NCBI GenBank assembly: GCA_051294905.1
Contig: CM119375.1
Location: 1,178,001-1,242,000 of the forward strand
Source: Botryllus schlosseri
Lineage: Eukaryota
Direction of reading: 5' to 3'
Length of the DNA stretch: 64,000 bases
Positions within the stretch are counted from its first letter, which is position 1; every line of letters starts with the position of its first letter. A program made the position numbers and the translations under genes. The notes beneath the pieces are model-generated. The model was given only the letters and a program-made list of their open reading frames with translations. It was not told where the DNA came from and did no database searches. This document shows positions 4,262-18,671 of this stretch, piece after piece.

Positions 4262-7200
4262 ATGTTGAAGAGCATTTTTCTGTCGATTTGCATTCTTGGG
4301 TCTGCCTACGCGCAATGGAACCCGAACTTCGCGTCGGACCGCTACGGAATGGTCCATTTATTTGAGTGGCACTGGGGAACCATCGCAGACGAATGCGAAA
4401 CAATGCTGGCTCCAAACAAAATCGGAGGTGTTCAGGTAAGTTCTGTTGCACCTGTAAGGGGAATATAAACATCACATGAGTGGTATCCTTTGCGTTTGGT
4501 CGGTATACACTACGACGGCCAGCAATCAAACCGTAGGAACAACTAGTTGTCTCATTAGACGATCTAATGCGAAATGGCGGTAAACTAATTTTAATCCAAT
4601 TCGTAAAATGTTTCTACGCTCCTAAGTCTAATCTGATTTGTGAAATGTTTCTATTCTCTCACATTTTAATTCTAATATAAGTTCTGGTTTTCCTGTAAAT
4701 GCGACAGGAGATCCGTAGAGTGCGAAACGAGCCAAGATCGAAGTGCAGGCGCTCGCCAATCCCATACTTATGGGAATGTCCTCTGATTTGATTTGAACTG
4801 AATTTGATTGTCGTTGTCGTTTTTTAGAATTCCTAGTTAAATTAAATTTCAATTTGTACGAATCCTATAATTCTAATTCTAATCAAGTTAGGAAAAGCTA
4901 AAAATTTGATACGTTCGCTGATGTGAATAATATCTAAAAACCAATCATTGTGCGCAGATCTCGCCTCCGAGTGAAAACAGAATTGTACAGCCGAGGCCGT
5001 GGTGGGAGAGATATCAACCGATCTCATACAAGTTGGAAACTCGATCTGGTAATCGTGCCGACTTCATGTGAGTGACGTCTTCGGGTTCTGGGTGTCTTAT
5101 CTCAGCATTGATACTGCACAATCCAGTTGGATTTAAGACTTTTGTAGCAGTTTCGATTCAATTGCCGAGAACCTGAATTTTAGCAGATTTACGAATGCTC
5201 TGACTTGTACAAAATACGACTCTCTAGTTAGTTGACAGTCAACTAGTTACTGTTCTTCGAGTAGTCCTGGTTCTAGGTGCGTATTTTGAATATCCAGTAG
5301 TTTGTACATGTACATGTACAAGTTTGGCTGACACAGGCCAAAAGTATTTTCTACTAAGAAAATTAGCCGCCGAACAACTAGAAAACCTTGTGTCTTCTTG
5401 TGGCGTTAATCGCGATATTATGTTGTGTGATGCAGTTATTGTTAGCTCAGAGTCATCGCTAGTCGCTACTAACAGTGGCGTAGCAGAGATGAGCGGATTT
5501 GGAATTTCTATGTCCTAATCCAATCGAAATCCGAAGCTTGAAATCCAAATCCAAAACCTAATCCATAACTTTTTCATATTCAAGTCCATGTACAATTCTA
5601 ATCCGATTCCAACTTGAAATTCAGAAAAAAATGCTAATTTACGCAAGGGAGGGATTGGAAAATCTTTTTTCACAACCGACGATTCTCTTGATTTAGGATA
5701 ACTTGGCACAGGGCTGCACCTCTCATGTTCATTTGCACCGAGTGAACCATAGTGTAGTGTACCATAAGTAAAATAATAACTGATCTGAATAAAGTTTGTC
5801 GCCATTCGCCACACGACATATTATTCTCCCCCAAAATTGGTAGTAAATCCAATCCAAATACTAATCCGTTCAGAAAAAAACTCTAATCCTAATCCAATCC
5901 AAATCCGACAAAATGTCACAAATCCTGTTTTTTCAAATCCTAATCCTAATCCATGCTCATCTCTGTGGCGTAGCCAGGGGGGAGTTTTAGTGGTCGAAAC
6001 CCTTCGCGTTTCAAACTTGTTCTGATGTTCGTGTGGAAAGCAGATTCGATTCAAACAAAATAAAAATAAAGAAGTTGTTTCGGAATTGAATCTACTTAGT
6101 TGTGTTTTAGTAATTTAGTTGCGCATTTTTAAGGGTCATTATGGTTGCAGTTATATTCTAGTCGCGAGTTTTGAAAATCTACTAGTTGTAGAAGTATGTG
6201 TGATGGAATAACGATTTCTGCAGCGACATGGTGGAGCGATGTAATGCTGTCGGCGTACACATCTACCCCGATATCGTCATCAACCATATGTGCGGTGCAG
6301 GCGGTTCGGGTAAGTCATTCTATGACGCCTTATTTGCGAAATGGTGCCTCATCGCCTAATTTGATAACGGCTATTTTACGACTGATAGTCAGGAATGATC
6401 GAACTACTCCGCGTCACATTTATGACCTTATACAATGTTGACTAAATATATTTTATTGCAACTCTTCGTACAGTGCAGGGATACTCGAATATTTTTAGCG
6501 AAGGTTCAAAAGTACTTTTTCGACCTTCTACTTCCGGCCCTCCTGGCATCCCTTTGAAATGTATATTTCTACTTATAAATAGTAGAAGCTTACGGTGTTA
6601 CTTTTAATATTTCAGCAGCAATACCAAATGCTTTTGGCTCTCCTGTACGCTACATGCTGAAGTGATTGATTTATTTTCACTCTCGTACGTTTACTCCAGG
6701 CACTGGAACTGGCGGTACTTACTTCGATGCCGATTCGCTGGACTTTCCGGGAGTTCCCTACGGCTACACAGACTTCAACACGGAATGCACGGGCGGTATC
6801 AATTACGCAGATCCGTGGTCGGTAAGGAATTGCTGGCTTGTTGGACTGACTGATCTCAACCAAGGAAAGGATTACGTGCGAGGTGAGAACTTGGCCTACG
6901 ATATCCGAACGGAATTGACGGAAATATTCACTTGCAGGAAAGATGATCGACTTCATGAACGACATGATCAACATCGGTGTCGCCGGATTCCGAGTCGACG
7001 CTTGCAAGCACATGTATCCGGGAGATTTGGGAGCCATTTTCGGAGGCCTGAGTAATCTTAGAAGCGACGTCTTTGGCTCTGGGGCAAGAGCATACATATT
7101 CCAAGAAGTCATCGACCAAGGAGGTATTTTTAGAGCGTAGCTAGTCAGTTTCCAACCTTCCAGTGGCTTTTTGACCGTAACCATAGCTTCTGTTGTACTT

Positions 7201-18671: not shown

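Follow-up and report, generated by a model that had tools for sequence, protein, structure and literature searches.

The alpha-amylase gene in a 64,000-nucleotide stretch of Botryllus schlosseri DNA (contig CM119375.1, positions 1,178,001 to 1,242,000; hereafter the window) raises the question whether its reading frame truly runs on beyond the enzyme into a long arm of trefoil modules, and what such an arm might do. An earlier note, made from the letters of the DNA, had proposed a protein of 931 aa with a tail of about 450 aa, its frame being carried past domain C by phase-compatible exons. The rebuilt gene model bore this out: 16 exons on the + strand (4262-18671), joined via canonical splice sites except for one GC-AG intron (17048/17956), yielded a 2796-nt ORF encoding 931 aa, in which a tail of 446 aa begins after residue 485 and the stop codon occupies 18669-18671 (Table 1). 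The donor at 14271/14272 and the acceptor at 15008/15009 make a phase 1 join, through which the frame runs on beyond ..RVFAIYTD.. into GGGINGGG and from there into Gly- and Thr-rich linkers.

Table 1. Features of the amylase-trefoil gene, in positions of the window, with the evidence for each.
Feature	Position	Strand	Evidence
Whole coding region	4262..18671	+	gene model, RNA joints, Styela P0108 60% identity over residues 1-870
Exon 1: start codon, signal peptide aa 1-17, catalytic domain start	4262..4435	+	RNA contig joint 4435/4958
Exon 2: aa 59-94	4958..5067	+	gene model, RNA
Exon 3: aa 95-123; Ca ligand N115, H116	6224..6309	+	alignment; joint 6309/6700
Exon 4: aa 124-184, domain B; Ca ligands R166, D175	6700..6882	+	alignment, RNA
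Exon 5: aa 185-246; R203 (Cl), nucleophile D205, H209 (Ca), acid/base E241	6938..7123	+	joint 7123/7458
Exon 6: aa 247-278	7458..7552	+	joint 7552/8290
Exon 7: aa 279-321; N301 (Cl), H302, D303	8290..8419	+	alignment, loose RNA end
Exon 8: aa 322-346; R339 (Cl)	11996..12071	+	gene model, alignment
Exon 9: aa 347-390	12206..12336	+	gene model, loose RNA end
Exon 10: aa 391-451, domain C start	13483..13665	+	Pfam Alpha-amylase_C 44.6 bits; joint 13665/14140
Exon 11: aa 452-495, domain C end, Gly-rich linker start	14140..14271	+	joint 14271/15009; same in P0108
Exon 12: aa 496-585, phase 1-1; Gly-rich linker, T1, Gly/Ser linker	15009..15278	+	Pfam Trefoil 35.2 bits
Trefoil T1, 8-Cys variant, in exon 12	15065-15208	+	
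Exon 13: aa 586-659, phase 1-1; T2 and Thr/Pro-rich linker	15494..15715	+	30.4 bits; joints 15278/15494, 15715/16554
Trefoil T2, in exon 13	15499-15642	+	
Exon 14: aa 660-824, phase 1-1; T3, T4, Thr-rich linkers, GC donor	16554..17048	+	46.8 bits, 2 stretches
Trefoils T3 and T4, in exon 14	16562-16705; 16811-16954	+	
Exon 15: aa 825-890; T5, Asp/Gly linker, T6 first cysteine (18141)	17956..18152	+	40.7 bits
Trefoil T5, 8-Cys variant, in exon 15	17961-18101	+	AlphaFold2 model
Exon 16: aa 891-931; remainder of T6 (six-Cys, GCCW), stop	18546..18671	+	50.9 bits; joint 18152/18546

Direct RNA support was found for 13 of the 15 introns, one of them the GC-AG intron. Spliced joints were seen in the amylase part (4435/4958, 6309/6700, 7123/7458, 7552/8290 and 13665/14140) as well as in the tail (14271/15009, 15278/15494, 15715/16554, 17048/17956 and 18152/18546), and loose RNA ends agreed with 6882/6938, 8419/11996 and 12336/13483 (the one at 8419 reads into the start of exon 8, and the one before 13482 is the end of exon 9). 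Direct RNA support was absent at 5067/6224 and 12071/12206 only, and the alignment with the Styela clava relative crosses both of these joins without a gap. The decisive junction between exons 11 and 12 (14271/15009), on which the proposed fusion turned, was crossed by RNA reads and contigs in three runs from three studies (a contig of X1 with 128+127 nt, three reads in X16 and a loose end in X2), while 13665/14140 and 17048/17956 were likewise each seen in three runs. Intron 11 had zero coverage in the RNA runs examined, and neither a tail-less transcript nor termination after exon 11 was seen in them. The joint 15715/17956, present in 29 reads of X16, revealed an in-frame form lacking exon 14. 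A tail-less isoform through retention of intron 11 was also considered and rejected, the depth over 14272-14982 being nil after allowing for the exon part of the bin.

These data bear directly on the possibility of an artefact, in which the trefoil exons would form a separate downstream gene, fused to the amylase by read-through or assembly error. Read depth in exons 15-16 was about 10x that of exons 10-11 in X16, and a second sequence variant was present at 18152/18546, both of which speak for such an artefact. Nevertheless, we consider it hardly credible, given that 14271/15009 is spliced in three runs from three studies across an intron devoid of coverage, that Styela repeats both the fusion and its junction, and that Clavelina agrees in intron layout. 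Moreover, tblastn across the window revealed no second amylase or trefoil copy, and none past 18671. The depth excess and the variant could stem from reads added by another trefoil gene of similar sequence or by a further allele. The locus is a real and expressed gene for a secreted tunicate digestive alpha-amylase, with one gene and one transcript that includes the tail.

The amylase part is 52-63% identical to animal amylases, and exon 5 matched Tenebrio, human and pig amylase chains with an E of 6e-20. Alignment with the mammalian pancreatic amylases P0263 and P0277 placed D205, E241 and D303 on the catalytic D197, E233 and D300 (pig numbering), of which D300 is the transition-state Asp, and the Ca ligands N115, R166, D175 and H209 (pig N100, R158, D167 and H201) and Cl ligands R203, N301 and R339 (pig R195, N298 and R337) were all present, in agreement with the original claim of an intact D/E/D triad and intact ion sites. 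Also as claimed, the N-terminus aligned with the mammalian amylase signal peptide and its cleavage site, with the cut predicted before Gln18 (directly ahead of QW), and the protein finishes with ..PWCYHQVQG, without a hydrophobic segment. From these alignments, the enzyme looks like an active, chloride-dependent GH13 alpha-amylase of the animal type. The accompanying statement that typical animal amylases stop near 500 aa held for most of them, but not for echinoderm, hemichordate and amphioxus forms of 700-760 aa. Their extension carries no PF00088 in the precomputed Pfam annotation and looks like a domain different from the window tail, itself made up solely of trefoils and linkers. An "extra C-terminal domain" of bilaterian amylases has been mentioned previously (PMC3096672).

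The six trefoil modules first proposed for the tail all exceeded the curated cut-off of Pfam Trefoil (PF00088, 21 bits) with scores of 30-51 bits (T3 and T4 scored together), and the linkers between them are Gly/Ser-rich and Thr/Pro-rich. T6 fits the canonical six-Cys spacing (C-x9-10-C-x9-C-x4-CC-x10-C) exactly. In T1-T5, C2, C3, C4 and C6 are kept, the fifth Cys stands two residues further on (GC-[LI]-W-C), and two additional N-terminal Cys (CxDCxC) give rise to an 8-Cys variant, which suggests a fourth disulfide in these modules. An AlphaFold2 model of T5, built with a 60-row module alignment (a single-sequence run with pLDDT 49 was discarded), reached a pLDDT of 89.8, and Foldseek matched it best to human TFF1 (6v1d; TM 0.76, rmsd 1.6 A, 39% identity), with further matches to TFF3, pSP and the GAA trefoil. 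This confident model predicts the three-loop trefoil fold for T5. The ESM Atlas look-alikes of T5 were bacterial Cys-rich metal-binding clusters only, with scores <=0.72, and were taken as chance.

When the sugar-contact residues were defined after earlier structural work (PMC7221086, PMC5653652), all six modules proved to keep both xDCG (Asp before the second canonical Cys) and PWC (Pro-Trp before the last Cys). Across the 46 modules of 24 amylase-trefoil proteins, D/E/N was found in 45 and PW in 45. Furthermore, T1 is 87% identical to T1 of Styela, compared to 73% for the amylase domains, which argues for selection on T1. T2-T4 are 89-91% alike among themselves and the Styela middle pair is 98% alike, indicating that the two sets were amplified independently.

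The window protein itself was absent from both protein sequence collections searched. Its nearest relative was the Styela clava "alpha-amylase-like isoform X1" (P0108; 833 aa, 60% identical, five trefoils), while the "alpha-amylase A-like/B-like" proteins of Clavelina lepadiformis (P0112, P0115) have two trefoils and about 20 environmental, apparently marine sequences combine an amylase with one to three. Like the window gene, the Styela and Clavelina genes encode a signal peptide, GH13, domain C, a Gly-rich linker, one or more 8-Cys trefoils and a canonical terminal trefoil; the junction sequence of Styela is nearly identical to that of the window gene, and Clavelina shares with it the pre-tail intron and the one that interrupts the last trefoil. 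Their module numbers differ from the six found here. In the amylase tree, 23 of the 24 trefoil-bearing amylases fell in a single tunicate clade, and P0150, with a Thr-rich linker and two trefoils, grouped beside hemichordate amylases and probably represents a separate gain of trefoils. Judged by these comparisons, the window gene is a member of a tunicate-wide amylase-trefoil family and not a one-off. The novelty originally suspected was thus narrowed: the architecture recurs in Styela, Clavelina and the environmental sequences, all bearing automatic names only, but the literature searched held no characterised enzyme of this kind and no paper describing an amylase with trefoils, in ascidians, other tunicates or elsewhere. 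UniRef amylase models of Ciona end at ..AIHVNAPC and are probably cut off, since this is exactly where the Clavelina tail starts. A region-restricted search with the Styela tail returned 7 matches only, probably since Thr/Gly-rich words dominated.

Trefoils occur on other enzymes of alpha-glucan breakdown. Vertebrate GH31 enzymes (GAA, maltase-glucoamylase, sucrase-isomaltase) resemble the window protein in carrying a P-type trefoil on an alpha-1,4-glucan-degrading enzyme, although they are exo-glucosidases with one N-terminal trefoil packed on the enzyme, whereas the window protein is a GH13 endo-amylase with six C-terminal trefoils on long flexible linkers. In both human TFF3 and the GAA trefoil, the pocket grips an alpha-linked, gluco-type terminal sugar by its 4- and 6-hydroxyls. 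The GAA pocket (D91/P125/W126), whose residues are kept in the window modules, was found to hold acarvosine and was proposed by its authors as a secondary substrate site for glycogen adherence; it was observed only after proteolytic trimming, and the structures of MGAM and SI showed no such site (PMC5653652). GH15 glucoamylases with a trefoil-like domain have been described from choanoflagellates, apusomonads, cryptomonads and Cymbomonas, which are phagotrophs (PMC5741210). Proteins of that kind were among our trefoil matches (P0014, P0015, P0031, P0076); they likewise place the trefoil on a secreted or phagosomal alpha-glucan hydrolase, but belong to another family and other organisms and have one to three trefoils at either protein end. 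To our knowledge, choanoflagellates and those other phagotrophs make no mucin-type mucus. Ten of the 95 closest trefoil proteins carry a catalytic domain, and nine of these ten are alpha-glucan enzymes (five GH15, three GH13, one GH31); the search behind this count started from a trefoil borne by an amylase, which may have biased it.

The arrangement also recalls microbial amylases with CBM20/25/26 arrays, in which a GH13 core is likewise followed by a linker and a repeated C-terminal accessory binding unit, and trefoils were found together with such modules in P0216 (CBM26, GH13 and trefoil) and in an Orpinomyces protein (CBM26, trefoil and GH31). We know of no listed CBM family formed by the trefoil, and the literature searched contained no paper in which the P-type trefoil is classed as a CBM. 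The trefoil factors themselves are divalent mucin lectins that use Asp/Asn and Trp (PMC7221086). TFF1-3 share with the window modules the fold, this dyad and multivalency as a working principle, but they are small peptides that consist of a single domain or a pair and include no enzyme, whereas the window protein has 931 aa with a 485-aa amylase in front, and five of its six modules depart from them by a GC-x-W-C motif in place of GCC-W and by two additional Cys near the module's N-terminus.

The analysis established the gene and its transcript, intact catalytic machinery, the trefoil fold and an architecture conserved across tunicates. The tail is best read as a multivalent glycan-binding arm, directed at either alpha-glucan chain ends or mucus. 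A lectin role in general is supported by the conserved Asp and Pro-Trp sugar contacts. At a confidence just short of even, we favour an arm aimed at alpha-glucan chain ends, in the manner of a carbohydrate-binding-module array. The amylase would have gained this C-terminal arm by shuffling of phase 1-1 exons, and the six trefoil (P-type) lectin modules are set apart by Gly/Ser and Thr/Pro linkers that are flexible and probably carry O-glycans. The Asp and Pro-Trp of each module would form a sugar pocket as in TFF3 and the GAA trefoil, and six weak pockets would jointly grip many non-reducing ends on starch or glycogen particles of trapped plankton, holding the enzyme on its insoluble substrate while the food string travels through the gut. 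Module number would be tunable through cassette-exon duplication and omission of exon 14. Substrate binding is favoured because trefoils repeatedly pair with GH13, GH15 and GH31 alpha-glucan enzymes, and alpha-glucan as the target is further supported by the acarvosine held in the homologous GAA pocket and by the occurrence of GH15-trefoil enzymes in phagotrophs that are not known to make mucin-type mucus.

Counted against alpha-glucan binding is the confinement of the fusion, among named species, to mucus-feeding tunicates. The arm might instead act as a six-valent trefoil factor that binds glycans of the pharyngeal net, food cord or gut mucus, so that the amylase is not washed out, a credible reading that we nevertheless place well below even. 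Tunicates being mucus-net feeders, their exclusive possession of the fusion among named species would suit it, as would the probable separate gain of P0150 beside the amylases of hemichordates, which are mucociliary feeders. Mucin-binding TFFs also use the very Asp/Asn and Trp dyad that is kept here (PMC7221086), and Ciona amylase is expressed in the stomach and distal intestine (PMC8462739). However, mucus anchoring leaves the trefoils on protist and anaerobic-fungal GH15, GH31 and GH13 enzymes unexplained (PMC5741210), and tunicate mucins are not known to offer a glycan ligand. Bivalves, also phytoplankton feeders, are without the fusion, which fits a mucus role equally well or better, and the Thr-rich linkers do not discriminate between alpha-glucan and mucus.

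Alternatively, the tail might not act as a lectin, mainly helping instead to stabilise the protein or protect it from proteases, to secrete or sort it, or to form oligomers, or it might be a pro-region cleaved after secretion, as is the C-terminal propeptide of the Pseudoalteromonas haloplanktis amylase. Trefoil domains are compact and protease-resistant, cleavage might occur in the Gly-rich linker that follows domain C, and the range of one to six modules across species and isoforms suggests tolerance. Yet the near-invariant dyad and the high conservation of T1 point to ligand binding, and a stabiliser has no need of six copies on long linkers, making such a role improbable.

Extending alpha-glucan binding to the whole family, P-type trefoils might be ancient binders of alpha-glucoside ends, recruited by GH13, GH15 and GH31 folds from protists to animals, with the mucin lectin activity of TFFs arising later and tunicates going furthest, with up to six modules including the new 8-Cys subtype; we regard this broader scenario as rather doubtful. 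Should alpha-glucan ends prove to be the ligand of the arm, the trefoil would represent a new carbohydrate-binding module family, which would account for the long-puzzling trefoils of GH31 enzymes, human GAA, MGAM and SI among them, and would hint at the origin of trefoil-factor lectin activity. If it binds mucus, the arm would show how filter feeders retain digestive enzymes in a moving mucus food string. The 8-cysteine variant would add a hitherto undescribed compact disulfide scaffold, and under either reading these amylases offer a natural one-to-six-module series for studying valency versus enzyme retention.

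The forward strand between 4200 and 19000 was translated in its three frames, and GT/AG pairs that keep the frame open were scored for every intron. The resulting splice-site model joins 16 exons into a 2796-nt ORF of 931 aa, the length that an earlier note on this DNA had arrived at. Except for intron 14, a GC-AG intron (donor CAG|GCAAGC) that was RNA-confirmed in three runs, all introns are GT-AG. Exons 12-14 are in phase 1 at both ends, as is typical of shuffled extracellular modules; exon 15 passes from phase 1 at its start to phase 0 at its end. With exon 5 as sole query, solved amylases of insects, fish and mammals were matched at E values of about 1e-17 to 6e-20, and alignment with mammalian pancreatic amylases confirmed that the catalytic residues (D205/E241/D303), Ca ligands (N115/R166/D175/H209) and Cl ligands (R203/N301/R339) are all kept, as the note had read them. 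The signal peptide it had recognised aligns to its mammalian counterpart, with a predicted cleavage site before Gln18.

Publicly available RNA runs from this species were mapped onto 13300-18900 and 3900-8700. The proposed exon 11-12 junction (14271/15009) is indeed found in transcripts: one contig of run X1 spans it (128 nt in exon 11, 127 nt in exon 12), three reads of run X16 cross it, and a contig of run X2 terminating in exon 11 continues into the first letters of exon 12. In none of the four runs is the remainder of intron 11 covered at all, so neither a tail-less nor an intron-retaining form can be seen there, and the signal must stem from RNA rather than contaminating DNA. Of the 15 introns, 13 (the GC-AG one among them) are backed by RNA joints or matching loose ends, and introns 5067/6224 and 12071/12206 are backed by gap-free alignment to relatives across both joins. 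We regard the gene and its fusion as real with near certainty.

Exon 14 is skipped in frame by 29 X16 reads joining 15715 to 17956, and the predicted product has 766 aa and four trefoils. Either an allele with a shorter repeat array or alternative splicing could account for this form; in the two older runs, which consist of contigs only, just joints that include exon 14 are seen. At the 18152/18546 joint, a slightly different sequence (..GTTGACGAT GCAGACAAGACC..) appears in roughly half of the X16 reads and in one contig of X2, and exons 15-16 are covered about ten times as deeply as exons 10-11. The likely source is either a second allele or else a close paralogue with the same last two trefoils, and no such paralogue or second copy was found within the window.

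Features of the amylase-trefoil gene and its surroundings (T1-T6, trefoil modules numbered from the amylase side)
Feature	Position	Strand	Content
Amylase-trefoil gene	4262-18671	+	16 exons
Exon 12		+	T1
Exon 13		+	T2
Exon 14	16554-17048	+	T3 and T4
Exon 15		+	T5 and first Cys of T6
Exon 16		+	Remainder of T6
Intron 7	8420-11995	+	3.6 kb, nested inverted repeats
Intron 14	17049-17955	+	GC-AG
High-depth intronic stretches	5349-5992, 7764-8246, 13861-14047, 17227-17413		Many sequence variants
Island in intron 13	16428-16459		30 nt
SF3A2-like splicing factor	24326-25389	+	Open frame (..DPYFMKNHLGSYECKLCLTLHNNE..)
Sulfotransferase-like exons	44433-51973	-	Open frames (..YRNPKDQIVSWYNFF..)
V-ATPase B-subunit-like exon	62147-62521	-	Open frame

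In the high-depth intronic stretches RNA contig depth climbs to as much as several thousand; most likely these are dispersed repeats whose transcripts come from other parts of the genome. The intron 13 island, a read pile-up from two libraries with template-switch-oligo sequence on its flanks, could represent an abundant short RNA fragment or an artefact of the libraries. The inverted repeats of intron 7 (321 nt at 92%, 250 nt at 93% and 124 nt at 94% complementarity) are probably foldback or MITE-like transposon copies. The SF3A2-like, sulfotransferase-like and V-ATPase B-subunit-like frames, named by eye, suggest neighbouring genes.

The six trefoil-type modules described in the note all exceed the Pfam Trefoil gathering score. 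T6 is a canonical six-Cys trefoil with GCCW; T1-T5 have Leu or Ile in place of the second Cys of the CC pair, a Cys after the conserved Trp (GC-x-W-C) and two additional N-terminal Cys (CxDCxC), and this 8-Cys subtype is undescribed. T5 was modelled from a 60-row alignment (pLDDT 89.8), and the best structural matches of the model were human TFF1 (TM 0.76, rmsd 1.6 A), ligand-bound TFF3, porcine spasmolytic polypeptide and the human GAA trefoil. The Gly-rich and Thr-rich linkers noted earlier correspond to two Gly/Ser-rich linkers followed by three Thr/Pro-rich ones (14-18 Ser+Thr per 30-38 residues), the latter being, by composition, like mucin-type O-glycosylation regions. P0028 and a GH31 protein from a sea cucumber (P0217) also show the GC-x-W-C shift, without the extra Cys pair.

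An exhaustive profile search seeded with exon 14 yielded 95 trefoil-bearing cluster representatives, one of which, the amylase P0046, bears three trefoils at its C-terminus; another protein, P0006, has five trefoils joined to a glyoxal/galactose-oxidase-like domain. The amylase-trefoil family was gathered by word-indexed searches that started from P0046 and the closest relative; it comprises Styela clava 'alpha-amylase-like isoform X1' (P0108; 833 aa, four 8-Cys and one canonical trefoil), Clavelina lepadiformis 'alpha-amylase A-like' and 'B-like' (596 and 603 aa, each with one 8-Cys and one canonical trefoil), and about 20 unnamed, apparently marine metagenome or transcriptome sequences carrying between one and three modules. 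Identity between P0108 and the window protein is 60% across residues 1-870 (73% in the amylase domain), and their junction sequences are nearly identical. The Clavelina locus (taken from OX392443.1; locus positions 2938-22072) holds three tandem amylase genes of 609, 603 and 591 aa, with trefoils on the first two and none on record for the third, and shares with the window gene an intron before the tail and another within the last trefoil. Tail-less Ciona models, which end at ..AIHVNAPC, exactly where the Clavelina tail starts, are probably truncated predictions.

In an amylase-domain tree, built by a quick method that calls for caution at deeper branches, a single clade (SH-aLRT 100) unites the named tunicates with most environmental sequences and contains 23 of the 24 trefoil-bearing amylases. 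The other, P0150, in which a Thr-rich linker is combined with two canonical trefoils, groups with hemichordate amylases and likely represents a second, independent fusion. P0046 forms a long branch within the tunicate clade; it is encoded without introns on a very gene-dense Logan contig (1022-3097), adjoining a sulfate-transporter gene, and a compact-genome pelagic tunicate such as an appendicularian would fit as its source. Judged by their sequences, the modules share an orthologous frame with the relatives, made up of a 'GELAS'-type module, a 'GFMGI'-type module and, at the terminus, a canonical one. Identity to the Styela counterpart is 87% for T1 and about 55% for each of T5 and T6; T2-T4 are mutually 89-91% alike and the Styela middle pair 98%, the middle modules having been amplified separately in each lineage.

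In human TFF3, GlcNAc-alpha-1,4-Gal is contacted by no side chains other than those of Asp20 and Trp47, and mutating either abolishes mucin binding; Asp20, replaced by Asn in TFF1 and TFF2, grips O4 and O6 of the terminal alpha-sugar, and the authors state that Glc-alpha-1,4-Gal would fit the pocket (PMC7221086). The homologous pocket of human GAA (D91, P125, W126) holds the acarvosine part of acarbose via the same 4- and 6-hydroxyls, and was proposed as a secondary substrate site aiding adherence to glycogen (PMC5653652). Since xDCG and PWC are kept in all six window modules, and the 24 amylase-trefoil proteins have an acidic or amide residue in 45 of 46 modules and PW in 45 of 46, the tail would most simply be a six-valent lectin arm for terminal alpha-gluco-type sugars.

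Each pocket might then grip such a sugar and hold the amylase on its alpha-glucan substrate. We tentatively favour this substrate binding, at slightly under an even chance, because alpha-glucan hydrolases make up nine of the ten enzyme-bearing proteins among the 95 closest trefoil proteins (GH15 x5, GH13 x3, GH31 x1), because some GH13 and GH31 proteins combine trefoils with starch-binding CBM26 modules, one of these proteins coming from the genome of an anaerobic fungus (Orpinomyces), and because GH15 with trefoil is reported for choanoflagellates and other phagotrophs (PMC5741210). The arm may possibly bind mucus glycans as an anchor, a reading that we hold with some doubt: among named species the fusion is restricted to tunicates, which are mucus-net feeders, and the likely second gain falls near hemichordates. 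A non-lectin role of the tail seems unlikely and an artefactual fusion most improbable, the remaining probability lying outside these four readings.

Full-text literature searches returned no paper on an amylase-trefoil fusion and none treating the P-type trefoil as a carbohydrate-binding module; an animal amylase intron study mentions just an unpublished 'extra C-terminal domain' (PMC3096672), and long amylases of other deuterostomes have no Pfam trefoil. The suspected novelty thus holds as regards description, but the architecture is already present, under automatic names only, in public protein sets, and the window gene is one member of a conserved, database-visible family. Its animal GH13 amylase carries an accessory array whose earlier descriptions are confined to single copies on enzymes of GH31 and GH15, and the comparative pattern leads to a specific, cheaply testable claim on trefoil domain function.
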